The notes under the pieces were generated by a model. It was not told the DNA's origin. It searched no databases and worked only from the letters and a program-made list of their open reading frames with translations. A program made the position numbers and the translations under genes. From the NCBI GenBank assembly GCA_002269645.1, contig NIVC01002311.1:1-64000 (forward strand): DNA of 64,000 bases, in the 5' to 3' direction. This stretch comes from Macrostomum lignano (taxonomy: Eukaryota). Each line of letters begins with the position of its first letter. Within the stretch, counting starts at the first letter, position 1. Below are positions 2,909-52,870 of the stretch, one piece after another.

Positions 2909-3315
<407 letters not shown>

Positions 3316-3769
3316 ACTGTACTTTATGGACTCGAAAATTTGCCCAGAATTGAGGAACTTTTTTGGCGATCTTCCACCTTAATTATGGTATTATCTAGTT
3401 TATAATTTCTTATAAGACACACTTATCTCACAAGAACAGTCAGGACCCAAGGCGAGCAATGATCACTTTGATCAGCGGTGGCCATCATCAACGGACCCTT
3501 AATCACCAGCTTTAATCTCAAGCTATATACCGCTTAGCCATCTATGCATTCCCTATCGGCAGTTTAGACGAGGTTATGCATGTAATTACATATAAGAATC
3601 TCGTCGCATTCTTAGACTTTGATCTCATTCGTTTTTGACAACAACAGCAGGCTTGTGTTTAGCAAATCGAATTCGCCAATATGAAAGTAAGTACATCGCT
3701 TCGCCGTTAAATATCGATTAACTCATTTAGATCTTTTCGACTTTTATTAATTTACTCCAATACTGAACA

Positions 3770-4420
3770 ATGGGGAGTGAAGGGAAGTCACAGTGGGGAG
3801 TGAAGGGAAGTCACAGTGGGGAGTGAAGGGAAGTCACAGTGGGGAGTGAAGGGAAGTCACAGTGGGGAGTGAAGGGAAGTCACAATGAGGAGTGAAGTGA
3901 AGTCACACTGGGGAGTGAAGGGAAGTCACAGTGGGGAGTGAAGGAAAGTCACAGTGGGAGTGAAGGAAAGTCACAATGAGGAGTGATGGAAAGTCACAAT
4001 AAGGAGTGAAGGAAAGTCACAATAAGGTGTGAAGGGAAGTCGCAATGAGGAGTGAAGGGAAGTCACAATGAGGAGTGAAGAAGGGAAGTCACAATGAGGA
4101 GTGAAGGAAAGTCACAGTGGGAGTGAAGGGAAGTCACAATGAGGAGTGAAGGGAAGTCACAGTGGGGAGTGAAGGGAAGTCACAGTGGGGAGTGAAGGAA
4201 AGTCACAGTGGGAGTGAAGGAAAGTCACAATGAGGAGTGATGGAAAGTCACAATAAGGAGTGAAGGAAAGTCACAATAAGGTGTGAAGGGAAGTCGCAAT
4301 GAGGAGTGAAGGGAAGTCACAATGAGGAGTGAAGAAGGGAAGTCACAATGAGGAGTGAAGGAAAGTCACAGTGGGAGTGAAGGGAAGTCACAATGAGGAG
4401 TGAAGGGAAGTCACAGTGGG
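3770..4420. repeat. ~23-bp minisatellite
   Basis: Unit CACAGTGGGGAGTGAAGGGAAGT with variants. Confidence 0.95.
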
Positions 4421-4739
4421 AAGAATATTGAAATATGAAAAAACCTTGGCGTATTGAGTAGCTGTCGCTCAGAAGCGGAGCAGAATAACACTGAGCTCTC
4501 AGCAACCAACTAGGGAAGAGTCGTTAACTCGGAATACTCAAAGCAGCCAATCGGAATGTCCGAAGAGTTAGGGACAAGTACGGAAACAGGAGAATGAAAC
4601 TGAGCTGCCAAATTCGCAATTCGCCTTTTGCAAAAGGAGAGAGAGATACCTAGGGAGTTAGCAAAGGATTGACACTGACAACTGGAGAATCAGGAGCTAC
4701 AGTTCAGCCCAATATTATTTTTAAACAACGAACAGCAAC

Positions 4740-4866
4740 ATGCAGCCGCGCACCGGGGTTGTCATGGCAACCGTCGCTTTAGCCATGCTGACTGTCGCGC
4801 TGGCGCGTTTGGACAACGGCGGCGTCGATTTGGCCGACTGGCTGGAGGAGCGATCGAGGAGCAAGG
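4740..4866 (+). CDS. Putative neuropeptide precursor, exon 1 (signal peptide)
   Basis: ATG 4740: MQPRTGVVMATVALAMLTVALARLDNGGVDLADWLEERSRSK; hydrophobic signal ending ALA; phase-1 donor G|gtaaca at 4867. Confidence 0.8.
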
Positions 4867-5236
4867 GTAACAACAGGGGCTTAGAGGGATTAGGAAAGTA
4901 CAATTGCAAATAATGACAATAGAGGGAGAGCGTCCTAGATGACAGTTGAAAACAAGAGGATTAGATTAATAATGAAAATTATAGAAATTTTACATACAGA
5001 CAGGCAGACACAAAGACACATGAACTGGGGTGGACACAACTGACACCAAAGCACTGGATGACTTGGACACATAATGCATACTAGGGCATTGTGCACTGGA
5101 CACTGAGACAAGGAAGAAAGCAATATTTTTTGCTTTTAAAATCATTTCTAACGGAAGATTATCCACTGCCAGCAAGCTGCAAACTTTGTTCCATCATTAT
5201 CTCCATTATCCCCAATTGCCATCTCAACCTGAGCAG

Positions 5237-5454
5237 ACCGACTTGGTCCGAGCGAGTCCCGCCGCGACACGCTGGAAATGTTGCCGGCCACCAGGCGCCA
5301 CGATTTGCGACTGCTCCGGCTTGCCCGACGACTGGCCAAGGAGCTGCGAGAGGCGACCGAAGCGGCGGCGACTGCTGCGGCGGGCCACGACTCGGACCTA
5401 GCAACGGTTGTCAAGCGGTGTCGCCTCGGCCGGTTCTCCTGTCCGATTGGCTGA
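5237..5454 (+). CDS. Putative neuropeptide precursor, exon 2 (KR-CRLGRFSCPI-G-stop)
   Basis: Acceptor cag|AC in matching phase 1; reads DRLGPSESRRDTLEMLPATRRHDLRLLRLARRLAKELREATEAAATAAAGHDSDLATVVKRCRLGRFSCPIG*; total 114 aa; absent from the ORF track because it is spliced. Confidence 0.8.
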
Positions 5455-6343
5455 ATTGTCGATATGTCAGTCGCATCCTGCATAGCCACTAATATATTAT
5501 CTGTGGAGATCTTTGAGATGAAATGGACCGATAAAAAACCTTACAACGCTGCAACAACCCCCGAATGAGGGCTCCTCATCTTGAACTCAATTTTGGTCGA
5601 AAATATACAGTACATCAAGTCAGTCCCGATCCACCTATACAGGCTGTTTGCGTGCGGTTTAAGGAGGCACTCTGAATGAACTTTTTCAAATGATGTTCAT
5701 AGTTTAACAATATCGCGAAATTTGCTGTTCGGATCATAAATCAGCGTCACAGGGCGCGTTTCACAGCTTGAGCGCAGTGGCGTAGCCATGCAAAAGGTTC
5801 AAAGAGGGCCGTGCACGGCCGTGCACGTGCATATGCTGGCAGAATGGGGTCAGCAAGCAGGCAGTCGACGGTTGGTCGCCTAACCGCGTTAAGGTTTCAG
5901 GGCGCTGATAAACGACGGTACAACAGGCGATCTCAGAATCGTTTAAAGACGATTCTCGAGAGTTTTCTTGACAAATCGACACGTCATGCATTTGGTTTTT
6001 GTTACGATTCCCAAGATAGTCTGTGGGTGGTTTTAAGGATGGCCCAGGGCTGATGCATAAACAGCCCGATCTTGAATTTATCCAGCAGGAAGATCTCGAC
6101 CACCGCGTCAAAACAACGTCCGATCGACTGCGCTACGATGTCGCAGTTCGTAGTTGGAAACTTCGGTTGGTAAGCAAGTCGTCGAAGAAGACGAGAGGTT
6201 CCGTGATCTGCCTGTCAGCGCGCGTTGAGCACGAGGACGAAGTTGACCAAGGAATTTGAAAACGAATTGTTAAATAGAGTTTCTCGCTAATCTCGATATG
6301 CAGAAAAAGAAATTTCCTTCGTCAATTTACCAAGATTTTTTAT

Positions 6344-7755: not shown

Positions 7756-8814
7756 CCCTCCTGAATTTAAGGTTGATACCAAACAAAAAATCCCACAATG
7801 CCTATCGGATGCGATAGATACGATATATTTAGCCATACTGAAAATAGTTTTAGCAATTTTTTACAAACTTGCCATGACTGAAAGCTCTGATCCCGCGTCG
7901 ATTCAGACAGGAATCTGCTTCCTGTAAAGAAAGCAACAATCGGTAGAGATGCATTGTTACTTGTTAATTTAAAACGATATGTAAATGTAACAAAAGCTAT
8001 ATTAAGCTGGTGTTTTCAATGGGGAGAGAAGAGATCGAAGGCAGCCCTATAGCTACGAGTAAGAGCTAAGAATCGACACAGACCGGCTTCTACGCGTCGA
8101 AGCTGCAAAAAGTTCCATTCAATGTAGTTTTGAGCTCAACCAGACCAAGCGTGAATAACTTGAGCTTGATAAATCCAATTGAGGAATCCTTACTTATACA
8201 TGCCAGTGCACCAGAGAAAAGCACGTCCTTGCGTTTTTTCGTGATTCTATAATCAGTATGAATTTTCGAAGCTATAAAGACCCAAGTTTGTAACTCCACA
8301 TATAAGAGTGCTACTTGTACGAGCGTATAGTTTCATCATTAATGGCTAAAAATACTTCAAATTTCATGAAAGCTATAGACTAGGTGCAAACAGGCTGAAC
8401 TGCTAATGCAACGACCTGGGTTCGAATTTTTATCATGAAAAATAACTTATATAAAAGTCTTTTCAACCAAGCAAAGCAGACTTGACTTGAGAAAAGGAAA
8501 AAGAAATTAGAACTCAATCAACCTTCAATAAACCGCTTCGATCTTGGAAGATCGTCCAAGCTTTTAGACACGGCAGATTTTGTCTGCATTGCATTTTGCC
8601 CCTCCGTGCTTAGTAAGTCTTATTACGTTCCGGTGGGTGACTGCATATCAAATTCATTTTTTGTCGGAGAAGTTTTCATTTCTATATACATGCAGGGGTA
8701 AAATGTACCCGGTACATACATAAACATCGGTGAGCTATTAATTAATACATGAATATGCCATGTTGCATTTTTGTCCCCTAAATCTCTTTTATAAGCGAGG
8801 TTAATGGAGGAATT

Positions 8815-9460
8815 GGTGAGATGTCAAGGCTCACGGGGAAATTGCTGAGGTGAGATGTCAAGGCTCATGGGGGAATTGGTGAGATGTCAAGGCTCATGGG
8901 GGAATTGGTGAGATTTCAAGGCTCATGGGGGAATTGCTGAGGTGAGATGTCAAGGCTCATGGGGGAATTGGTGAGATGTCAAGGCTCATGGGGGAATTGG
9001 TGAGATGTCAAGGCTCATGGGGGAATTGGTGAGATGTCAAGGCTCATGGGGGAATTGGTGAGATGTCAAGGCTCATGGGGGAATTGGTGAGATGTCAAGG
9101 CTCATGGGGGAATTGGTGAGATTTCAAGGCTCATGGGGGAATTGGTGAGATGTCAAGGCTCATGGGGGAATTGGTGAGATGTCAAGGCTCATGGGGGAAT
9201 TGGTGAGATGTCAAGGCTCATGGGGGAATTGGTGAGATGTCAAGGCTCATGGGGGAATTGGTGAGATGTCAAGGCTCATGGGGGAATTGGTGAGATGTCA
9301 AGGCTCATGGGGGAATTGGTGAGATGTCAAGGCTCATGGGGGAATTGGTGAGATGTCAAGGCTCATGGGGGAATTGGTGAGATGTCAAGGCTCATGGGGG
9401 AATTGGTGAGATGTCGAGGCTCATGGGGGAATTGGTGAGATGTCGAGGCTCACGGGGAAA
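8815..9460. repeat. 29-bp minisatellite, about 21 copies
   Basis: Unit GGGGGAATTGGTGAGATGTCAAGGCTCAT. Confidence 0.97.
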
Positions 9461-10637
9461 TCGCTGAAATTCTGTGACTCATGGGTTACTGAGTTGCAAA
9501 GGATTAATTGGAGGTTGTTGGTAGTCCAAGCATCAAGGGGGGAGTGAGGTTTAGGGTTAAGCCATGGCTTTAAAGGGAAGTTTTGATGATATCTTAGGCT
9601 AGCCAGCTGGCTTTGAGGTCTGATGTTTTCATGCTTTAAACATCATTTTTCTTAGGAAACCTAGTAACTATACAAGGTCAAAAGCTGCATGTGATTTTTT
9701 GATTTATTGATAAAAAATGTGATTCCTTTCTTTGCGCGAAGATTACTAGTGCGTATTTTTAAACCGCCGTCTAGATTGCAACCCACTGCAAGGGTTCCAT
9801 ACGAGATTATATCAGTAGATTTCGAATCCAGAGTTTCTATACGTTATTTTTACACCTATGCTCTAGAGATTCCACTTAAAAGCTAACAATTATTAACTTA
9901 AAAAATAATCTTAAATCATTTAGAATAAACAAATTAGATTGTTTTAAGCAGGCAAAAGCTTAAACAAAGAGTGCATAGTCATATAGGTGTAATATAGCCG
10001 AATAAATATGATTTATGACCAATGAAAGGCACAGAATCGCCCAATGGTAAAAACACCAAACTAGTACAAAACTGCGCCACTTAGAAGTAACAAAATACAA
10101 AAAAATCGAATGACAGAAAAGGAAAACACTGCAGCAATGACAAAATAAATCAAACAAGGCAGTTATTAAAATTATCAACTTAGAAATAACAGCAAGCATT
10201 ATCTATGCAGCTAGTATAACTCTGAAATATAAAAAACCCAAGATCATGTCAATCATTCTTACAACAACAGCCGTCTTGGCTGTTCAGTCTCATAATTGAC
10301 CCACAGGATATACTCCGCAATAGACGGAGCGGAGGTGAACTGAGAGTTTAATTAACCAGTAGCTTATATTTTCTGTATGACAACCACTGTTCAGATTGGA
10401 TGCAACTTACCGAAGAGACAAAACTAATAAGCATATGCAATCATTGATCGATTCGAAAAGACCTGATAATTAATGAACAAAACGACACGAGGGGAAATTA
10501 ATAACAATATGTTAAATTCATAAAAAATTACAAGAATACCGAGAGGCATTTTTTGCAAAGAGTGTATTCCATAGAACACAGTTGTTGCAGTCGATTTGGT
10601 AACAACAGCCAGTCAAAATGATTGCGCTAATTTTGTG

Positions 10638-12609: not shown

Positions 12610-13235
12610 ATGCATGAAACACCTAATTTCCCATTCCTGAAACACCTGATTTCCCATTCCTGAAACACCTGATTCCCTATCCCTAAAACACCTGATTTCC
12701 CATCTCTGAAACACCTGATTTCCCATCCATGAAACACCTGATTTCCCATCCCTGAAACACCTGATTTCCCATCCATGAAACACCTGATTTCTTATCTCTG
12801 AAACACCTGATTCCCCATCTGAAACACCTGATTTCTCATTACTGAAACACCTGATTCCCCATCTGAAACACCTGATTTCTTATCCCTGAAACACCTGATT
12901 TCCCATCCATGAAACACCTGATTTCTTATCTCTGAAACACCTGATTTCCTATCTCTGAAACACCTGATTCCCCATCTGAAACACCTGATTCCCCATCTGA
13001 AACACCTGATTCCCCATCTAAAACACCTGATTCCCCATCTGAAACACCTGATTCCCCATCTGAAACGCCTGATTCCCCATCTGAAACACCTGATTCCCCA
13101 TCTGAAACGCCTGATTCCCCATCTGAAACGCCTGATTCCCCATCTGAAACGCCTGATTCCCCATCTGAAACACCTGATTCCCCATCTGAAACGCCTGATT
13201 TTCCATCCCTGAAACACCTGATTTCCCATCCCCAA
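12610..13235. repeat. 21/22-bp minisatellite filling HS2ST intron 2
   Basis: Unit CTGAAACACCTGATTCCCCAT. Confidence 0.95.
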
Positions 13236-13514: not shown

Positions 13515-13795
13515 GTTTAGATGAGATTCTATTAATAATGGGTGAGATTCTATTCATAATGGGTGAGATTCTATTCATAATGGGTGAAATTCTAGTCATA
13601 ATGGGTGAGATTCTATTCATAATGGGTGAGATTCTATTAATAATGGGTGAGATTCTATTCATAATGGGTGAGATTCTATTTACAATGGGTGAGATTCTAT
13701 TCAAAATGGGTGAGATTCTATTCATAATGGGTGAGATTCTATTCATAATGGGTGAGATTCTATTCAAAATGGGTGAGATTCTATTCATAATGAAT
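13515..13795. repeat. 21-bp minisatellite in HS2ST intron 1
   Basis: Unit ATAATGGGTGAGATTCTATTC. Confidence 0.95.
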
Positions 13796-14296: not shown

Positions 14297-14519
14297 GATA
14301 TCGGCTTTGTTTGTTTACGTGCACAAATATCTACTTTCAGTGTTGCAACTGAATAGTAGTAGAATATGTAATAACTACTATTCAGCTGTTATTCACATCC
14401 ATGCAAAATTGAGAGAAATTTTATTACAAATATTTGTAAGCGACTGTCATTAGTATTAATCCTGTCATAAGACTATATAAATATTCCGAGTGTAAATGAT
14501 ATTATAATCCTATTAGAAT

Positions 14520-15330
14520 GGAATCGGCGCTAAAACTGTCACAGACTGTTGAATTCGGCGCTAAAACTATTAGAGACTGTTGGATTCGGCGCTAAAACTA
14601 TTAGAGACTGTTGGATTCGGCGCTAAAACTATCAGAGACTGTTGGATTCGGCGCTAAAACTATTAGAGACTGTTGGATTCAGCGCTAAAACTATTAGAGA
14701 CTGTTGGATTCGGCGCTAAAACTATCAGAGACTGTTGGATTCGGCGCTAAAACTATTAGAGACTGTTAGAATCGGCGATAAGACAGCCACACACTGTTGG
14801 AATCGGCGCTAAAACTATCAAACTTTTGGAATCGGTGCTAAAACTATCAGACTGTTGGAATCGGCGCTAAAACTATCAGAGACTGTTAGAATCGTCGATA
14901 AGACAGCCACACACTGTTGGATTCGGCGCTAAAACTATCAGACTGTTGGATTCGGTGCTAAAACTATCAGACTGTTGGATTCGGTGCTAAAACTATCAGA
15001 CTGTTGGAATCGGTGCTAAACTGTCAGAGACTGTTAGAATCGGCGCTAAAACTATCAGAGACTGTTGGATTCGGCGCTAAAACTATTAGAGACTGTTAGA
15101 ATCGGCGCTAAAACTATCAGAGACTGTTAGAATCGGCGCTAAAACTATTAGAGACTGTTAGAATCGGCGCTAAAACTGTTAGAGACTGTTAGAATCGGCG
15201 CTAAAACTGACAGGCCGTTGGATTCGGCGCTAAAACTATCAGACTGTTGGAATTGGCGCTAAAACAGCCACACACTGTTGGAATCGGCGCTAAAACAGCC
15301 AGACTGTTGGAATCGGCGCTAAAACTGTTA
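14520..15330. repeat. ~29-31-bp minisatellite between SPSB3-like and HS2ST
   Basis: Unit GGATTCGGCGCTAAAACTATCAGAGACTGTT with variants. Confidence 0.95.
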
Positions 15331-15929: not shown

Positions 15930-16685
15930 ATCCAATCCACCCCACCGTTAGCTTAGCTACTCCAATCCACCCCATAGCTACCCCAATCCTCCCCTTAGCT
16001 ACCCCATCCACCCATAGCTACCCCAATCCACCCATAGCTACCCCATCCACCCATAGCTACCCCATCCACCCATAGCTACCCCATCCACCCATAGCTACCC
16101 CATCCACCCATAGCTACCCCAATCCTCCCCATAGCTACCCCAATCCTCCCCTTAGCTACCCCATCCACCCATAGCTACCCCAATCCACCCATAGCTACCC
16201 CATCCACCCATAGCTACCCCATCCACCCATAGCTACCCCAATCCTCCCCATAGCTACCCCAATCCTCCCCTTAGCTACCCCATCCACCCATAGCTACCCC
16301 AATCCACCCATAGCTACCCCATCCACCCATAGCTACCCCATCCACCCATAGCTACCCCAATCCTCCCCTTAGCTACCCCATCCACCCATAGCTACCCCAT
16401 CCACCCATAGCTACCCCATAGCTACCCCAATCCTCCCCTTAGCTACCCCAATCCACCCTATAGCTACCCCTAATCCACCCCATAGCTACCCCAATCCACC
16501 CATAGCTACCCCTAATCCACCCATAGCTACCCCATCCACCCCACAGCTACTCAGTCCACCCCATAGCTACCCATCCACCCATAGCTACCCCATCCACCCC
16601 ACAGCTACCCAGTCCACCCCATAGCTACCCCATCCACCCATAGCTACCCCAATCCACCCCACAGCTACCCCAATCCACCCCATTG
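15930..16685. repeat. 19/20-bp minisatellite filling an SPSB3-like intron
   Basis: Unit CCCATCCACCCATAGCTAC. Confidence 0.95.
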
Positions 16686-16690
16686 CTCAC

Positions 16691-17038
16691 CTGTACGCAG
16701 GCCATATAAGGTAGGGCAGGTTGTTAGTAAGCAGGCTGACCAAGCCAGGCGGCAGTGTCAAGGCCTCTGTAACGCAGAGCCTATCCGGTATGAGATGTCG
16801 CAGAGCCCTGCAGCTAAGCGCCTGCAGAGTGATTGGCAGACTAAGCGCCCGGATTAGTTTAACGCCACTCTTAGCCGCCGTGCTGCACACGGCCGGATAC
16901 ATTGGCGCCTTGAGACCGCGAGCGGCCACGCCAAGGCACTGGCGATTTAGAAAATAGGTAAGGGTGCCGTGCCAGAGGTCCAGGAGGAGGCCAACAATGG
17001 CGCCTTGGCCGAATGGTCTGCAGAATTCGCGTTTTTGC
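16691..17038 (-). CDS. SPSB3: SPSB3-like, exon with SPRY C-terminus and SOCS box
   Basis: FGQGAIVGLLLDLWHGTLTYFLNRQCLGVA..YPAVCSTAAKS..TLQALSCRALR..LTLPPGL parallels SPSB3; cag|G and AG|gtgagc splice sites. Confidence 0.9.
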
Positions 17039-17129
17039 CTGAGGCGCGATTTCAAGAGGATAGGGGAGTTCTTTTCATTTGTTTCGAGGCGCAAAACTGG
17101 GTTTAGGATACTTGAACACTTGCATATAT

Positions 17130-17870
17130 GGCGCCAAAATGAGTAGCAGTTGGCGCTAAAATGAGTACTAGGGAGCTGCCAAAATTGGTACAGGGAGCCG
17201 CCAAAATGAGTACCAGGAAGCTGCCATAATGAGTACCAGAGAGGCGCCAAAATGAGCACCAGAAAGCTGCCAAAATGAGTACCAGAGAGCTGCCAAAATG
17301 AGTACCAGAGAGCTGCCAAAATGAGTACCACAGAGCTGCCAAAATGAGTACCAGAGAGCTGCCAAAATGAGTACCAGAGAGCTGCCAAAATGAGTACCAG
17401 AGAGGCGCCAAAATAAACCCCAGAGAGGCGCCAAAATGAGCACCAGAGAGGCGCCAAAATGAACACCAGAGAGGCGCCAAAATGAGCACCAGAGAGGCGC
17501 CAAAATGAGCACCAGAGAGGCGCCAAAATGAACACCAGAGAGGCGCCAAAATGAGTACCAGGGAGGCGCCAAAATGAGCAACAGAGAGGCGCCAAAATGA
17601 GCACTAGAGAGGCGCCAAAATGAGTACCAGGGAGCCGCCAAAATGAGCACCAGAGAGGCGCCAAAATGAGCACCAGAGAGGCGCCAAAATGAACACCAGA
17701 GAGGCGCCAAAATGAGTACCAGGGAGGCGCCAAAATGAGTACCAGGGAGCCGCCAAAATGAGTACCAGGAGGCGCCAAAATTAGTGACAAGAAGACGCCA
17801 AAATTAGCACCAGAGAGGCGCCAAAATGAGCACCAGAGAGGCGTCAAAATGAGTACCAGGGAGCCGCCAA
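17130..17870. repeat. 24-bp minisatellite filling an SPSB3-like intron
   Basis: Unit GGCGCCAAAATGAGCACCAGAGA(G); explains the long stop-free W/F/L ORFs. Confidence 0.95.
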
Positions 17871-18016
17871 GCTTGTTACTTAGACACAAAATATCGCCTG
17901 TAAAACATTATCAACTGTATATGAATATTTTTATTTCTTAATCGAGGAAGGAGACAAGCTAGGCATACACGCTCTGACACAATTATTTATGAAAGAAAAG
18001 AAAAACAAATCCTCAC

Positions 18017-25916: not shown

Positions 25917-27223
25917 CGAGGGATACTCCAAAAGTTTTGCAATTCAACCACTTGCGCAAGTCGCACAATCTTCAAAACCAACTCTCTGTACAATAAACAT
26001 GTACATAGTCCCCACCTCAATTTTCAAGTGAATTCATACATATACGCCTGCTCAGCCCCCAGTCAAAGTCAGAGACTCCTTAACTGTACAGCTGCAGCCA
26101 TGGAATTGAATCGTGAGCAGAATCGGCTACTAATTTGGTACTGCCACAAGCGAAAGCTCACGGCGCTTGAGACTCATGCCGAGCTACTAGCAACATTGGA
26201 GGCTCAAGCGCCGTCATATGCTACGGTTACACGCTGGTACCGCGAGTTCCAGGCCGGCAGGACCAGCTTTTCTGACGACCCCCGGCCCGGGAGACCTCCG
26301 ACAGCAGCGACGGAGGAAAACATCGCTGCAGTGCAGGAGCCGATTCATCAGGATCCGCGAATCACCACGGACATGCTAGCTATGAATGTCGGCATTGGAT
26401 CGGCAGCGGTCGATACGATTCTACACGATCACCTGAGAGTCAGGAAGCTTTGTGCCCGATGGATACCCCACATCCTGACAGATGCTCAGAAACAGGCCCG
26501 CAGGGAGTTCTGTCAGTTTCTCATCGATCGATATGAGCACGGGAGCCATCAGCGCCGCTCTGAGGTCATCACTGGTGATGAGACGTTTCTCTATCATTTT
26601 GACGTCGAGACAAAGCGCAGCAGTGCAGAGTGGGTGCCGAAAGGTGGTCAACGACCCCTGAAAGCAAGGCGGTCCCGGTCCCAGGGCAAGCGGATGTTTG
26701 CCATCTTCTTCGACTCACAAGGCGTGGTGGCGATGGTGAAGCTGGAGGGTCAAGCTACAGTCACTGCTCGATGGTACACTGAAGAGTGCTTGCCAGTCGT
26801 GATCGACAGCGTGACCCAGAGGGCGCCAAGGACGGGAATGCGAGGGCAGAAACTTCACCATGACAACGCCCCCGCCCACACGGCTGCTGCAACTCGAGCG
26901 TTCCTGGACCAAGAGGGCATTTCAACACTACCACACCCGCCCTACTCACCAGACCTCGCCCCCTGCGACTTCTGGCTCTTTCCAGAAATCAAAAAGTCGC
27001 TTAGGGGGCACAGGTTTCAGTCCGACGAGGAGCTGGAGCAGGCGGCGAAGGAGGCGATTGACGGCATCCCAATTGAAGACTTCCAGGGCTTGATGAACAA
27101 GTGGCTCGGACGACGCACAAGTGTTTGCAGTTCCGGGGAGCCTACTTTGAAGGATTGTAATAGAAAAGTTTGGCAAAATTAACTTTAAATAGTTGAATTG
27201 CAAAACTTTTAGAGTATCCCTCG
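25917..27223 (+). mobile_element. Full-length mariner transposon (1307 bp)
   Basis: ~30-bp TIRs CGAGGGATACTC(C/T)AAAAGTTTTGCAATTCAAC, TA TSD at 25915-16 and 27224-25. Confidence 0.97.
26100..27160 (+). pseudogene. Mariner DD34D transposase with a C-terminal 1-nt frameshift
   Basis: WIPHIL, ITGDET, HHDNAPAH, YSPDLAPCD motifs; the canonical tail KCLQFRGAYFEGL* lies in another frame after ~27115. Confidence 0.92.
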
Positions 27224-34511: not shown

Positions 34512-36946
34512 TACATTACATTACATTACATTACAACGACGCTACGGTTGGGGGGCGCTAGCGCGCACACGATTGCGAAAAAGAGGGGCAGGGCAGATCG
34601 CAGCAGTCTGGGGGGTCAGTCCAATTGCCTCCAGGTCGGCAACGTGTCTCCCGGAGCGTCTGGGTCCGCCCTTGGCCGCGGCAGAACCGTTCGGTCGGCG
34701 CGTACAGAACGGCCAGTCCGAGCGGGTTGTCAAACCGCCGCAGGCAGTGTCCCAGCAGGGCCTGGCGGCGCCGGCGGAGGGTGGCGCTAAGGGACGGCGA
34801 TTTTGTTCTCGCCATCAGCTGGGCCGTCGGGGAGGACGGGCGGGTAGCGCACGCCCAGCGCCTTGCGCAGCAGGTTGCGGTGCATCGCGTCCAGGGCCCG
34901 TTCGTGCGTGGTTGTCATTGGGACAGCCTTCCATGCCGTAGAGAAGGATCGGCTCTACAACAGCGCGAAACAGGTACATGTAAATCTTCAGGTTGTCCCG
35001 CGCTCCGGAGGTGAAGATCGGCCTGAGGTGGTGCATGGCGCGCCAGGCCTGGGTCCTCCTGTCCGTGATGATCACCTCTGGGCTCATCACGAGGGTGCCT
35101 ATGTAGCGGAAGTCGCTGCACGTTGAGATGGCCTCGCCGTTGGGCAGGGTCAGCGGTGGGGCATTGTCAGCACCCACGTGCAGCACCTCCGTCTTGCCTG
35201 CGTTAATCTGCAGGCCGATCCGAGCGCCTTCCTCGGAGAGTCGAGTAAGAGCGTGCTGGGCTGCTACAGGGTCTCGGCACAGCAGCGCGATGTCATCAGC
35301 GTATGCGAGGGCTGGGAGCGTCACGGCAGTGTGGCGGGAGCTACACTGAGGCGCGAGGACAAAGCTGTCGTTGTCTCGAAGGCAGCGGCGCAGGATGTAG
35401 CCAACAGCCAGAATGAAAAGCAGGGGGATAGCGTGTCCCCTTGCAGCACCCCAAAAGTGGTATCAAACTCGTCCGTAGGGCCATCGCTGGAGTCAACAAA
35501 CGCCTTGGAGTTGTGGTACAGGTCCATAACTGCCGTCACCAGGGTGTCGTTGACGCCGTACTGAGCCAGGAGCCAGGCTAAAGCCGTCCTGCTGACAGAG
35601 TCGAAGGCCTTCCGGAAGTCAACGAAGACGATAGACACGGCTCGAAGACGAGTCTTGCAGGTTTCGACAATGCACCGAATGGCCACAATCTGCTCCGTGG
35701 TGGATCTGCCTGGCCTGAAGCCGCTTTGGAGCTCGAGCAGCAGCGATCGTTCAGGACAGGAAGGAGCCGATTGCGCAACACTGCGTTCAGCAGCTTCGGC
35801 AGCGTGCACTCCAGTGCGATGCCGCGTTGCTTGTCAAGGCTCGTGGAGGCGCCCTTCTTCGGGATGGAGACGATTCTTGAAGTACGCCAGAGGGGGGCGG
35901 CCGTAGCAGCTCGGTCGCCGCCGAGACAGCAGTACTTGTTCAGGAGGCTAACGTCCGCGGCGATGATCGGGCCGGTGTATAGAAGTCGCCATGCTGGGCT
36001 GGGGTGAAGCCGGCGGCGGGGAGAAGGGGAGACGTCGGGGAGGGGGAATTTAAAACTTGCCGGTAGTGGTCGACAAGCAGGCTCTTTCTTTGCTCGATGT
36101 ACTCAGCGCCAACTACTGTGGTCGGACGAGGTCTTCGTCCTGGTTGATCGCTCGCCAGGCAGCGGTTGTGCCGGCAGTTTTCGGTGGCGGCCTGGATCTC
36201 TTGGACCACCTCCTCAAACACTTCAGTGCGTTGGGCGTACATCACCTGCAGGTTGTCTCTGGCGAGTCTAGCCTGGTCGCTGTCCTCGCCGTAACGCGCA
36301 GCGGCGCTCTGTGCAGAGCGCCTGGCAGTGGCGATTACGGGGTCGCAGTCCCAAATTGCCCTTGGCTGGTGTCCTATTTGTCTAGGCAGAACTGACGCTG
36401 CCCACCCGACGGCACTCGCAAAGGCCTCAGCTGTCTCAGTGATTGCGGGACTCGCGTTGGAGAGCTCGGTCAGGAAGGCAGTGCGAGTCCCTGGGTTCCT
36501 CAGGTCTGCCCAGAGAGGCTTCGGCGGAGGGCGTCTGAATCTCGTCCAGGAAAGGTTCAGTTCGCAAGCAACCAAGCTGTGGTCGGAAGCGACGCATCTG
36601 GGGCGGACGTTGATCACTCTGCACACCCTATAACGCATTGGGAAAGGGCAGAGAATCCATTCCAGCCTTGTCGTTCTGCCGTTTGGGCCGAAGAAAGTGG
36701 GAAGCTTCGCGAGCCGCTGCCGTAAAGAGCCATTCACTCCGACGAAGTTCCTAGACTGGATGAAGGTCTCCAGAAGGCGGATTTGGCGTTGGGCACGCCA
36801 CAGTTGTTCCATCGGGGGGCAGGGGCGCATTGAAGTCTCCAGCCGCAAACATAAGGTCGCGAGCCGGGATTGAGTCCAGGAGGTGGCCAAGCCTGTCGTA
36901 CAGGTCTTCAGTCTCGGCGGGGTTCTCGCTGGTCCTGGGGGGGGGG
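34512..36946 (-). mobile_element. 5'-truncated APE-RT non-LTR retrotransposon (RTE-like), frameshifted
   Basis: GDFNA and SDHSLV (APE); VDFRKAFDSV, GVLQGDTLSP, YADD (RT); (TGTAA)n 3' tail; candidate 10-bp TSD CATTGTTAAT / CATTTTTAAT. Confidence 0.92.
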
Positions 36947-43798: not shown

Positions 43799-43865
43799 AT
43801 GCGGCTTCTTCTGTTCGTTTCGGTCTTCATTCTGGCAGCTCCCGGCACCTCCGGGGCTGAGCTGG
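43799..43865 (+). CDS. Signal-peptide exon, probably of the WSC-domain gene
   Basis: MRLLLFVSVFILAAPGTSGAEL then phase-1 donor G|gtgagt; upstream acceptor ctgcag. Confidence 0.7.
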
Positions 43866-44075
43866 GTGAGTTTGAGATGCGCCTCACCTGAGCTGGGTGA
43901 GTTTGAGATGCGCCTCACCTGAGCTGGGTGAGTTTGAGATGCGCCTCACCTGAGCTGGGTGAGTTTGAGATGCGCCTCACCTGATGTGTGGTGAGTTTGA
44001 GATGCGCGTCTCACCTGAGCTGGGTGAGTTTGAGATGCGCCTCACCTGAGCTGGGTGAGTTGGAGATGCACATGA
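43858..44075. repeat. 31-bp tandem repeat containing the 5' splice site, about 7 copies
   Basis: Unit CTGAGCTGGGTGAGTTTGAGATGCGCCTCAC. Confidence 0.95.
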
Positions 44076-48070: not shown

Positions 48071-51000
48071 CTAGTACCGCAGCCAATCCGGCGGCCATCG
48101 TTCTCGCACCGGATACCTCCTGGTGGCGTTCTCCTCGTCCGACTGCTCCAACGACTCATTCAACACTCCCGACACGACGCTCTGGGGTGACTCCGATCCC
48201 CTCGTACTCACTTCGACCTCGCCTAGCTGCTGATCTCGTGGCAGGTCTCTCTGGCGATATTCCATCATCTCCTCCACTTCCTCATCTTCTTCAGGTCCTT
48301 CCGGCGGCTCGGCAGCTTCAGTCACACTGTCTTGCCCAACCGTCTCCTCTGCAGGTGTCACTCTCTTGAACGGCGACAAATTGTTGAAGTGAACCCTCTT
48401 GGTTTTCCTTCTATTCGACGGGTTCTGCACCTCGTACACCGCTTCCGAAATCTTGCGCACTACTTCCACTGGTCCTTTCCAGTCGATCCGAAACTTATTG
48501 GGCACCTCTCCCGGCACCTCTCCGGAAAACAAAGACTTTATCACCGGGTTGGTACGCTGATCCACGGACCTTCTTGTCGCAGTAGTCCTTCTGCACCTTC
48601 TGATAAGTACCAGTTGCTCGCCTCACCGCCTCGTGCGCCCTGCCCAGAATGTCTCTTAAGGCCGTTACGTACGACGTCCCCGCCGGAATCTCTCGTGGCG
48701 TTCTGTACGCAACGTTTAGCGGTAACCGCATTTCTCGACCATGCAGTAAAAAAATAAGGCGTATAGCTCGTGCCGCGGTGCACAATCGACCGGTACGCCA
48801 TCAACGCCGAATCAATCAGGTCTTCCCATCTGCGATGCAACTCCTTATCACCGACTTCAGGGTTTGGTTGAACTTCTCCACCTGCCCGTTACCGCTCGGG
48901 TGATAGGCCGTAGTCCGGGTCTTATGGATTCTAAGCAGAGTGCACAGCTCGCACATCACTCTGGACTCAAAATTGCGTCCCTGGTCACTGTGAATCGAAC
49001 TCGGGCAACCATAGACACTGATCCAGTGGGCAAATATTGCTCGAGCGACGGTGTGAGCTCTCTGATTGCGGATCGGGATCGCTTCTGGCCACTTAGAAAA
49101 CGCGTCCTGCAGCTCTGGCACTTCTTGGCAACGGCCCAACAATATCCACCATCACTCTCTCGAACAGTGGCTCGAGCGGCGCTCTGGCGTCCTTTGCCAG
49201 CTTCAACTTGGCACACGCTTCGCAGCTCCGCAGAAATTCCACGATTTCGCGACTAATTCCGGGTCTCCAGAACCGTGACAGGACCTTCCGCTTTGTCTTT
49301 TGCAGGCCGAAATGGCCGCCCGCCACGCCACTATGACAGTGCATCAAGATCCTCCGCAGCAGACACTGTGGTAGAACAATCTATTACCATGACAGAGCCC
49401 GCTGCGATGCACTACGTAGTAGTCGAATTCTGCCAGCTTCTCGAGCCACCTAGCACACTGACCTTCCGGACCCTTCAGATTGTGAATCCACTTCAAGTTG
49501 TTGTGATCCTTTCGCAAGCAGAATCTTCTTCCGGCCAGATAGTACCGATACTTGACCATGAACGTCACCACCGCCAACAGCTCTACTCTCATCGTGCAAT
49601 AGTTCCGCTCTGCCGATGACAGCGATCTTGAGCCATACTAAATAACCTTGCTTCTGAGACAACACAGCGCCAATGCCGATGGATGAGCTCGCATCTGTGT
49701 CGAGGATGAACTCACCAGCCTCGGGACCAAAATCCGGAAACGCCATCACATCTGTACTCGTCAGCCGCGCTTTCAAGTTCCGGAACGATCGCTCATCGTC
49801 CGGTCCCCACTCAAACTCGACACCTTTGCGAGTCAACCTGAGCAGCGGCTCGGCAACACTCGAGAAGTTTTTGATAAATCGGCGATAATAGCTGCACAAT
49901 CCCATGAACGATTGCCCGTCTCTGGTGTTATTCGGTTGGGGCCAGTTTCTGATCACTTTGACCTTCTCGCTCTCCGTCTCCACTCCTGCCTCCGACACCT
50001 GATGGCCCAGGAACGTTACCTTCTTCATCAGAAAATGACACTTCTCTGGCTTCAACTTCACTCCAGCCTTCCGCAGCCGAATGAACACCTCTTCTAACCT
50101 TTCTAGATGCTCGTGAACCGTCTTGGACCACACGAGGATATCGTCCAGGTAGATTAAGCACGTCTTCCAGGCCACGTCGCGCATTGCTAGAGCCATCAGC
50201 CGCGTGAAAGTTGCAGGGCTATTGACGAGTCCAAACAGCATCACTTTCCACACGTACTGACCCTTCAGAGGCACCGAGAAGGCCGTCTTGAGTTGATCCT
50301 CCAGTCTTACTTTCACCTGCCAATAGCCGCTGTGGAGGTCCATCGAACTAAACACTCTTGCTCCCGCCAGTTCGTCCAACGCATCGTCCAACCTCGGCAA
50401 CGGAATAGCATTTCTCGTCGTTACTTTATTCAAACCACGGTAGTCTACACACATCCGTAGGCTGCCATCCTTCTTGCGTACACAAACGATTGGAGCGTTC
50501 CAAGGAGACTGCGCTGACTCGATGCGTCCCTGCTCCTCTAGCTCATCCACGAGAGCATGCACTTCTTGCCTAAGGTGCGGGGGCAGTCTTCGCGGCGGGA
50601 TGTTGACCGGCTTGGCCTCTCCAGTGTCGATCTGGTACTCCACCAAGGGTGTCACACCCAACTGTGCTGAGTCCGTCACGAAAAGATCACCATACGAGTC
50701 GACTAAGTCCTTAAACCGCCGACGCTGCTCCTCAGTCGTCATTCCGTCGCCCCACTTGCCGAGCTTCTCAAAAACTTTGTCCTCTTCGAGTTCCTCGGCC
50801 TTATCTGTCCTGCTGGGACGTTCCTTGGAATCGCTCTGCAACGCCGCGATCCTTGGCTGCTCTTCCAGTTCCAGCGGTCGATACCAGCCAACAGCCTCTC
50901 CTCGCCGCAACCGCACCGGTTGCTCTGATAGGTTGCAGACACGAACCACAATCTTTCCGCTCTCGTCTGGTGTCACAAGCGCTCTCGCGGCAACCACCCC

Positions 51001-51520
51001 AGTTCCCTTGGGGTGCTTCAACGGATCCATAATTCCTGCTACTCGGACATTTCGACCTCCCCTCGTATCCAGTCGGCCGAGCAGAACCGCCTCGTGGCCT
51101 GGTTTAACCGTTGCTGTATCATTCAGGCGAATCCGGCACGCCACTGGTCGCTCTCGTTGGAACCGGATGGGAAGCACTACATTCCTGAGTCGCAGCTCTG
51201 CTCTGGCATAATCGATTTGGCAGCCGTGCCGTTGCAGGAAATCCGAACCCAGCACGAGGTCGTAATCAATACCCGACACTACCAGCTCGTCGATAGGCAC
51301 CTTCTCATCAATTTCTAAGTCCAACGTGGTGACACCAATCACTTGAATGGGGCTGCCATTTGCAGTCGTGACTTTGGCGAATGACCCCCGGAAGAGCTCT
51401 GGTTTGTGCCGCAACCGTGAGAACATCGCCTCCGACATGATGGTACACGAGGCTCCCGAGTCCAACAGCGCTGAAACGTGATTATCTTTGGCAATCTTTA
51501 TACTCACATAGACTGACGTC
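48071..51520 (-). pseudogene. Gypsy pol (protease, RT, RNase H, integrase), frameshifted
   Basis: LLDSGAS; WNAPIV..LRMCVDYRGLN; YLDDIL; FILDTDAS; HHCC zinc finger; FSKWPEA..HSDQGRNFES..GNGQVE. Confidence 0.92.
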
Positions 51521-51529
51521 GGGACGATG

Positions 51530-51935
51530 TTGATGGTGGCCTGTGAAATACTCGGATTCAGAATGGTGCTAGATGCTCTAGTTAGCGGTGTCGCAGCCGG
51601 TGCAAACGACGATGAAGCAGCAGGTGGAATGGTTGATGACGCAAGAGGTGGGACGATTGATGCCGCAACAGGTGGGACGACTGATGACGCAGCAGGTAGG
51701 ATGATTGATGACGCAGCAGGTGGGACGACTGATGACGCAGCAGGTAGGATGATTGATGACGCAGCAGGTGGGACGATTAATGACACAACAGGTGAGACTA
51801 TTTGGGATGCAACAGGTGAGATGATGAGATGATTGATGATGCAACAGGTGGGACGATTGATGACGCAACAGGTGGGATGATTGATGACGCAACAGGTGGG
51901 ACGATTTATGACGCAGCAGGTAGGATGATTGATGA
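51530..51935. repeat. 24-bp repeat block between gag and protease
   Basis: TGATGACGCAGCAGGT(A/G)GGA(T/C)GA(T/C) units encoding SSIILPAA/SSVVPPAA. Confidence 0.85.
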
Positions 51936-52003
51936 AGAGTTAAATGTCGCCTGATCCCTTCTCCTCGACGGCTCCATTTGGGGGCGTACCTGACCTCCGG
52001 GGC

Positions 52004-52870
52004 TCACTTCCCCCACTGCGGGCCCCGCTCTCCATTTCCCTCCGCGCGACACTTGGCAGCCACGTGACCAAGTTTGCCACACCGGTGGCACCGAATGCCG
52101 CGTCCCGCTTGAGCTCCTTGGTGCGGACCTCCGGCTCTCTTCCGACAGCGGTTCGCCATGTGCCCCTTCTCATGACAGTTCCAACATTCCACATCGCTGT
52201 GTTGATTCGCTGGCGCTGGTCTCTGAGAACCCTTCCCTCCGCCAGATCCTGACGCCTGACTCTGCCGTAGCTGCCGTTCCTGCTCCTCTATCCTGGCCCG
52301 CAGAGCGCCGACGTCCTCTTGATTTGCCTCCCCGGCTGCGCCCACAGCGTTGAACGCCGCCGTCTTGCCTCGGCCCGGCTGCCCCACGTGGGCCGCTCGA
52401 ATTGCTGCGTCCAGCTGCCGGGCACTCCTGATCGCAGCAGCGAGACTCTCCGGCTGGCTAAGAAATAATTTCTCCCGGACTGACTCGGCTACTCGCACAC
52501 CTTTCATGAACCGGTCCTTGGCCAGCTCCGACCTCGCGTCCTGATCAATCGTCGGATAGGCGTTCCGGACTATCTCGAGCAGGGCGTCACCGTAGGCCTC
52601 CTTCGACTCCTTCTGATCTTGGTCCCGTCCCGCCAGCTCCAACCTGAAGTCCTGCGGAGTCCAATGCTGCGTGAACCTGTTCCGCAGATGCTCAGTGAAC
52701 TCCTCATACTCCAAACCATCCGCCAGATTAAGGTTGTCCACCGCGATATAAGCTGTGTTGAGATCCAGCAGACTCATCAGATGTGGCCTTCGCCTCACAG
52801 AATTCGTTGAAACTCCTCAACCACAGGCGAAAATTCATCCCAGTCACATACTTCACCGGCTTTGCCACTC
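52004..52870 (-). CDS. Gypsy gag with two CCHC zinc knuckles
   Basis: CWNCHEKGHMANRC and CHRCGKLGHVAAKC; Q..ES..AYG capsid-like motif. Confidence 0.85.

Follow-up and report, generated by a model that had tools for sequence, protein, structure and literature searches.

A two-exon gene of Macrostomum lignano encodes a candidate orphan prohormone for a predicted cyclic, amidated peptide at its C-terminus

Here we describe a small gene of the flatworm Macrostomum lignano that lies at record positions 4740-5454 of contig NIVC01002311.1 (assembly GCA_002269645.1). The window, by which we mean the whole stretch of DNA that was analysed, is the first 64 kb of this contig, and all coordinates are window positions. 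We found that this gene, Mlig019832, is a real, transcribed two-exon gene which has been annotated yet is uncharacterised. Its product is a candidate prohormone, an orphan whose C-terminus would give rise to a cyclic amidated peptide, and it represents no new kind of system. The reading that we favour, and that we consider probable, is that the protein is the precursor of an orphan neuropeptide or peptide hormone and yields cyclic CRLGRFSCPI-amide, where both the processing and the function are deduced from sequence features. The genes involved are Mlig019832, which is present as three near-identical copies in the assembly, and its homeolog Mlig011990.

We read and translated the gene directly from the forward strand. 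Splicing of 4740-4866 to 5237-5454 across a GT..AG intron of phase 1 gives a coding sequence of 345 nt, which is 114 amino acids and a stop. The translated product is MQPRTGVVMATVALAMLTVALARLDNGGVDLADWLEERSRSKDRLGPSESRRDTLEMLPATRRHDLRLLRLARRLAKELREATEAAATAAAGHDSDLATVVKRCRLGRFSCPIG, followed by the stop codon. The start ATG is at 4740 and an upstream in-frame TAA is found 5 codons away. The splice donor at 4866/4867 reads GCAAGG/GTAACA and the acceptor at 5236/5237 reads ...CTCAACCTGAGCAG/ACC. The intron of 370 nt is in phase 1 because the coding part of exon 1 is 127 nt long. An in-frame TGA is located at 5230-5232, therefore the AG at 5235-5236 is the first usable acceptor. Exon 2 contributes 218 coding nt, the last three being the TGA at 5452-5454.

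Using an exact-sequence look-up we found that an identical 114-residue protein has been deposited in GenBank as PAA46943.1, PAA58986.1 and PAA67221.1 ("hypothetical protein BOX15_Mlig019832g1/g3"). The identical protein in UniProt is A0A1I8GIK8, which carries the name "Secreted protein". A preliminary description of this DNA, made from the sequence alone, had proposed the exons 4740-4866 and 5237-5454, and this model matches PAA46943.1, PAA58986.1, PAA67221.1 and A0A1I8GIK8 residue for residue. The annotation of GCA_002269645.1 was produced from genome-guided RNA-seq assembly (StringTie, TACO) and a de novo transcriptome, with open reading frames called by TransDecoder (PMC5730564). Since the deposited annotation was built from RNA-seq transcripts, the exon junction has indirect RNA support. 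The gene had also been described as hidden, which does not hold, as the transcript-based pipeline had already annotated it (PMC5730564). The accompanying remark that the open reading frame track misses the gene is correct in a narrow sense, because the open reading frames of the two exons are 57 and 58 aa long and the default cut-off is 60 aa; it is only a track of the prokaryote type that overlooks the gene. The lophotrochozoan affinity that had been assumed for the source agrees with the organism, M. lignano.

The preliminary description had further claimed a prohormone layout for the protein, and our analysis bears this out: a predicted signal peptide is followed by a spacer and by KR-peptide-Gly-stop at the extreme C-terminus. 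Exon 1 encodes the predicted signal peptide and the start of the propeptide. Arg4 provides an n-region, a hydrophobic core (highest Kyte-Doolittle mean over 9 residues, 2.56) spans residues 5-22, and the A-x-A site at residues 20-22 fits a predicted cleavage at VALA22/RL. Dibasic residues are found at four places, with RR at 51-52, 62-63 and 73-74 and KR at 102-103. The last of these directly precedes the tail, which reads KR-CRLGRFSCPI-G-stop, so that the ring is Cys104-x6-Cys111 and Gly114 stands directly before the stop. Thus the features of the generic prepropeptide class are present in the sequence, both the signal peptide and the combination of a dibasic site, a short peptide and a C-terminal Gly. 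We searched for the pattern [KR][KR]-C-x4-10-C-x0-3-G-stop and found 1 occurrence in all six frames of the window, compared to a mean of 0.09 in first-order Markov shuffles.

These features suggest how the precursor would be processed. The predicted signal peptide, probably residues 1-22, would direct the protein into the endoplasmic reticulum and then be removed. A disulfide between Cys104 and Cys111 would close the ring of six residues. A convertase of the PC2 type would then be expected to cut after Lys102-Arg103, and the exposed Gly114 would be converted to an amide by PHM and PAL. In C-terminal Gly-extended secretory peptides the use of the Gly as amide donor is a general rule. The product would be cyclic CRLGRFSCPI-NH2, a basic decapeptide with a calculated monoisotopic MH+ of 1148.58 and a 2+ ion of 574.79, which would most likely signal through a G-protein-coupled receptor in the role of a neuropeptide or peptide hormone. 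The propeptide of ~80 residues with the three RR sites is most likely a spacer; it is predicted to be hydrophilic with an Arg/Leu-rich amphipathic stretch. Nervous-system expression is known for a pc2 homologue of M. lignano, RNA815_2403.2, whose knock-down by RNA interference (RNAi) arrests development and is lethal in hatchlings (PMC4490696).

At the 5' side of the gene we observed a U-rich tract with an AG at 4713-4735 (TATTATTTTTAAACAACGAACAG), 4 nt before the ATG. From its sequence this tract could be a spliced-leader trans-splice acceptor or, equally, a TATA-like element. Trans-spliced genes make up 38.8% of M. lignano genes (PMC5730564). Downstream of the stop no canonical AATAAA was found within 1.1 kb, where the only related signals are AATATA at 5491 and 5602. 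Antisense open reading frames over exon 2 (5148-5489, 5159-5404 and 5224-5388) were dismissed, as they are GC-rich, have non-ATG starts and lack support.

The assembly contains four copies of the gene, L001 (NIVC01001500.1), L002 (NIVC01004642.1), L003, which is the copy in the window, and L004 (NIVC01000040.1). Copies L001, L002 and L003 are >99.8% identical over at least 3.7 kb, and L004 is ~95% identical. This diverged copy is the homeolog and encodes PAA92798.1 (BOX15_Mlig011990g1). The pattern of copies fits assembly redundancy together with the hidden polyploidy of the M. lignano DV1 line (PMC5730564).

We used L004 for tests of constraint, which are thus a comparison within one genome. 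In unique non-coding sequence 4.5% of aligned sites differ between the copies, and there are 0.016 insertion or deletion (indel) events per nt. We found 0 indels in the 345 coding nt when 5.5 are expected from the flanks and intron (P=0.004). The intron itself carries 7 indel events and 5.9% mismatches, and the exons carry no indels. Similarly, 0 substitutions are seen in the first 114 coding nt, which cover the signal peptide and the beginning of the propeptide, when 5.1 are expected (P=0.006). L004 retains the GT, the AG, the open frame and the signal peptide. In the KRCRLGRFSCPIG tail we found a single synonymous change, from TGT to TGC at Cys111, and the amino acids of CRLGRFSCPI are the same in all four genomic copies. 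Every one of the seven amino-acid replacements relative to the homeolog falls in the spacer, with none in the signal peptide or the tail. This supports a reading frame, signal peptide and tail that have been maintained, and does not indicate strong purifying selection on the whole protein. A variable spacer beside a kept frame, signal peptide and tail is usual for prohormones, and it would also fit a weakly constrained young gene.

All seven differences from L004 in exon 1 lie within 13 nt at the donor (4854-4866; codons 39-42, SRSK vs SSSQ), and this cluster accounts for 2 of the seven replacements. It looks like a multi-nucleotide replacement or the boundary of a gene conversion.

Several points weigh against the reading of the protein as a prohormone for CRLGRFSCPI-amide. 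The ratio of non-synonymous to synonymous change (dN/dS) against the homeolog is 0.89, with 7 non-synonymous and 5 synonymous codons, and the overall divergence of the exons is 4.3%, equal to the non-coding rate, so that these values do not demonstrate selection on the whole protein. When the tail is taken alone, its conservation is not significant, with 1 change in 42 nt when ~2 are expected. The ring itself contains R-L-G-R, a minimal furin-type motif, and cleavage within the ring is possible. Small orphan secreted proteins of M. lignano also include gland and seminal-fluid products. In a word-indexed search of 5.8 billion proteins the sole match was the cluster of the query itself, and an exhaustive phmmer search of 1.84 billion representative proteins returned only the query. 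The identifiers Mlig019832 and Mlig011990 had no match in the main texts of papers or in the M. lignano expression-study supplementary tables that were searched. Finally, the neuronal role, the processing and the receptor action of CRLGRFSCPI are inferred from its precursor.

Pfam gave nothing above threshold for the 114-residue protein. A sub-threshold match to DUF834 covers the signal-peptide region and was dismissed as a match of hydrophobic composition. The preliminary description had judged that the ring residues match none of the families that it compared, and the Pfam result and the protein searches, which recovered no homologue, are consistent with that statement. We also back-translated KR-CRLGRFSCPI-G-stop into an exact pattern and a pattern with conservative substitutions and searched the JGI metagenome contigs, which gave 0 matches for each; this null result is uninformative because flatworm DNA is unlikely in those contigs. 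For the many other flatworm proteomes the lack of a homologue counts as a true negative as far as sequence similarity is concerned, and for the genus Macrostomum, whose other species seem to have only unannotated genomes or transcriptomes, it is an absence of data. The peptide string had 0 matches in the searchable literature, which does not cover the two main flatworm neuropeptide surveys, and a prior description may exist. In the M. lignano neuropeptide and prohormone literature that was searched we found no catalogue with CRLGRFSCPI.

We compared the precursor with the known families of ring peptides. Like the peptides of the excitatory peptide/CCHamide family (EP/CCHa), CRLGRFSCPI would have one disulfide ring and a predicted C-terminal amide, and the G-R-aromatic sequence GRF within the ring resembles the GRW of Aplysia KCHGRWAIHACFGGN-NH2 (PMC12969411). 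However, in EP/CCHa precursors the peptide directly follows the signal peptide, the rings of lophotrochozoan members are eight residues in size, and the peptide ends in GGN-amide or G[GA]H-amide (PMC12969411). In contrast, CRLGRFSCPI is C-terminal in its precursor, has a ring of six residues and has a predicted tail of PI-amide. The position of the peptide, the size of the ring and the tail thus rule out membership of EP/CCHamide. Arthropod CCHamides have a six-residue ring. The preliminary description had given C-x6-C as the ring size of both AstC (allatostatin-C) and CCHamide, which stands for protostome AstC (PMC9048919) and fails for lophotrochozoan EP/CCHamide, where the ring is x8 (PMC12969411).

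The Cys-Pro-Ile-Gly ending recalls the C-P-x-G-amide tail of the vasopressin/oxytocin type, which includes platytocin and cephalotocin, a resemblance that had been pointed out from the sequence. It is superficial. The ring has six residues and not four, the peptide is not beside the signal peptide, and the protein has no neurophysin or other Pfam domain. The Gly also differs in its role, as Gly114 would be consumed as the amide donor because it is the last residue. The vasopressin (VP)/vasotocin precursors of M. lignano are encoded by separate genes (PAA85176.1 and others; PMC8896804). The size of the ring, the place of the peptide and the missing neurophysin rule out the vasopressin/oxytocin family.

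Two further families share with the candidate a C-terminal peptide closed by two Cys. As in melanin-concentrating hormone (MCH) precursors, the peptide is preceded by a dibasic site, and the L-G-R triplet in the ring recalls the core of vertebrate MCH. MCH-type peptides have Met or Ile after the first Cys, a basic residue penultimate to the second Cys and rings of 8-10 residues, and they are known from deuterostomes only (PMC4772807). Unlike these, CRLGRFSCPI has Arg after the first Cys, Phe penultimate to the second and a ring of six, and MCH is not amidated. The residues and size of the ring therefore rule out MCH. The peptides related to somatostatin and urotensin-II (SSRP-like) likewise sit as a C-terminal disulfide loop on a small precursor. 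In lophotrochozoans the SSRP-like loop has a W-K motif, and the gene has three exons with phase-0 and phase-1 introns and a peptide divided between exons 2 and 3. The loop of CRLGRFSCPI has neither Trp nor Lys, and the gene has two exons with the peptide wholly in exon 2. The absent W-K motif and the gene structure rule out membership of SSRP/urotensin-II.

The architecture of the precursor is closest to that of the AstC type. AstC precursors carry a single peptide at the C-terminus. Like them, the candidate is a small precursor with a signal peptide, a spacer, a dibasic site and a lone peptide at the extreme C-terminus, and it has a single intron within the proregion. The cysteine loop of protostome AstC always has six residues in a family with 'no strictly conserved motif' (Koch et al., PMC9048919), and the loop Cys104-x6-Cys111, which ends three residues from the stop, has that size. 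AstC loops commonly contain Asn and frequently FxP, and their first residue is aliphatic or aromatic (PMC9048919). In contrast, the loop RLGRFS has neither Asn nor FxP and has Arg first. All of the AstC and SSRP genes that were examined have in common a proregion intron of phase 0 (PMC9048919), and the intron found here is in phase 1. The tail is Pro-Ile-amide, and the AstC tail is a single residue of the Phe/Tyr type. AstCCC, one of the arthropod paralogues, is C-terminally amidated. The phmmer search of the 1.84 billion representatives gave no sequence link to AstC. In sequence the protein is an orphan, and it is not assignable as a member of AstC.

We considered whether the protein could be a highly divergent flatworm orthologue of AstC that signals through an AstC/somatostatin-type (rhodopsin-gamma) receptor. 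The shared layout, with the lone C-terminal peptide after a dibasic site, the invariant six-residue loop and one proregion intron, agrees with such an origin, and a family with 'no strictly conserved motif' (PMC9048919) could accommodate a divergent loop. AstC is broadly distributed among lophotrochozoans (PMC8557429). It is absent from the list of polyclad-larva neuropeptides quoted in a 2026 review (PMC13551398), which leaves a gap in flatworms that such a peptide could fill. However, the phase of the intron, the composition of the loop with its leading Arg and the lack of a phmmer link all run counter to orthology, and none of the AstC literature that we compared describes a tail of Pro-Ile-amide. 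We therefore regard a divergent AstC as improbable. As a tentative possibility, to which we give more credence than to AstC, CRLGRFSCPI-amide may be the founder of a neuropeptide family that is restricted to Macrostomum or to flatworms and has its own receptor, and thus neither a divergent AstC nor an EP/CCHamide. Such a gene may have been born recently, given that it has no homologue and evolves in a near-neutral manner outside the signal peptide and tail.

A different explanation is that the protein is a secreted product outside the nervous system, such as a gland, seminal-fluid, antimicrobial or defensive protein, in which the KR and Gly are used outside the nervous system or are incidental. 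The protein is an orphan, and near-neutral evolution, here with a dN/dS of 0.89, is common in secreted proteins of reproduction or defence that evolve fast. The predicted peptide is strongly basic, with two Arg and a free N-terminus, and the propeptide has an Arg/Leu-rich amphipathic stretch. Against this, a signal peptide combined with a dibasic site and, at the very C-terminus, a short peptide with two Cys and Gly-stop is the signature of a prohormone and not of a gland protein, and the amino-acid changes all lie outside the signal peptide and tail. The gene identifier is also absent from the supplements of an M. lignano seminal-fluid screen, which counts for little as the files are small. 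We judge a non-neuronal product to be unlikely, although somewhat less so than a divergent AstC. It could also be argued that the gene is a young or non-functional transcribed open reading frame that is open only through recent duplication and whose prohormone features are coincidental. The protein searches and metagenome pattern scans found no homologue, the exons diverge at the non-coding rate with a dN/dS of ~0.9, and minisatellite arrays lie on both sides of the gene in a contig that is rich in repeats. However, chance would have to account for 0 indels in 345 coding nt when 5.5 are expected (P=0.004), for 114 invariant nt (P=0.006) and for splice sites that have been kept. The tail motif has an expectation of 0.09 per window even before a spliced, in-frame signal peptide is required. 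We consider this explanation very unlikely, and the precursor of a cyclic amidated peptide remains the reading that we favour.

Orphan prohormone candidates with such an architecture are routine finds in invertebrate genomes. If the protein is a divergent AstC, the AstC family would be extended to flatworms, which would inform the debate on somatostatin and AstC. If it is lineage-specific, it would add to the cases in which neuropeptides of Platyhelminthes have turned over fast. Both outcomes would be useful but incremental. Among flatworms only M. lignano offers routine transgenesis, and it is also open to RNAi, therefore the candidate peptide is quickly testable. Flatworm neuropeptide complements are still poorly sampled according to the 2026 review (PMC13551398).

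Table 1. Features of the candidate prohormone gene and of the rest of the window.
Feature	Position	Strand	Basis or remarks
Unique upstream region, presumed core promoter and 5' untranslated region	4430..4739	+	Between the end of the 23-nt minisatellite (~4420) and the ATG
Coding part of exon 1, from Met1 through base 1 of codon 43	4740..4866	+	Translation; residues 1-42 identical to PAA46943.1
Predicted signal peptide, residues 1-22, MQPRTGVVMATVALAMLTVALA/RL	4740..4805	+	Hydropathy, -3/-1 rule; predicted cleavage site
Phase-1 intron, 370 nt, GT..AG	4867..5236	+	Splice-site context; GT and AG kept in L004
Exon 2 coding part: rest of propeptide, mature peptide, stop	5237..5454	+	Translation, deposited protein
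RR site 1 (Arg51-Arg52), possible convertase site	5260..5265	+	Sequence; conserved in P0002; putative cleavage
RR site 2 (Arg62-Arg63)	5293..5298	+	Sequence
RR site 3 (Arg73-Arg74), within predicted amphipathic Arg/Leu-rich stretch	5326..5331	+	Sequence
Dibasic cleavage site Lys102-Arg103, adjoining the peptide	5413..5418	+	Sequence; same in homeolog
Predicted mature peptide CRLGRFSCPI, Cys104-Cys111 ring of six residues	5419..5448	+	Sequence
Gly114 (putative amide donor for Ile113) and TGA stop	5449..5454	+	Sequence; predicted amidation
Minisatellite arrays	1032-1950, 2909-3320, 3767-4420, 8804-9461, 12615-13230, 13522-13792		
Minisatellite arrays, continued	14519-15326, 15954-16687, 17130-17870, 43857-44069, 51611-51935		
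400-aa open reading frame, weak SPRY-domain match (E 2.5e-6)	16687-17889	-	
Mariner/Tc1-type transposase, 384-aa open reading frame	26028-27182	+	Mos1-type helix-turn-helix (HTH), DDE_3 / Transposase_1 domains
Reverse-transcriptase fragment	34815-35324	-	Matches C-terminal part of RVT_1
Integrase C-terminal domain	48071-48565	-	
Aspartyl protease, reverse transcriptase and RNase H open reading frame, 778 aa	49450-51786	-	
Zinc-knuckle gag	52004-52798	-	

The remainder of the window is rich in repeats. Minisatellite arrays with periods of 4, 19-31 and 41 nt are found throughout the contig. Scans of the window with Rfam and for tRNA gave no match. Open reading frames of the long-terminal-repeat retrotransposon type occupy 48071-52798 on the minus strand, and the reverse-transcriptase fragment at 34815-35324 is probably a decayed retroelement. 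The open reading frame with the SPRY match lies largely over the 23/69-nt tandem array at 17130-17870, therefore much of it may be a repeat artefact. Close to the candidate gene, the distance from the end of one upstream 23-nt array to the ATG is only ~320 nt. The presumed promoter region that follows, at 4430..4739, shows 11 mismatches to the homeolog L004 over 310 nt, an identity of 96.5%. Further upstream, the array region is strongly different in the homeolog, with 52% identity at -1500 to -500.

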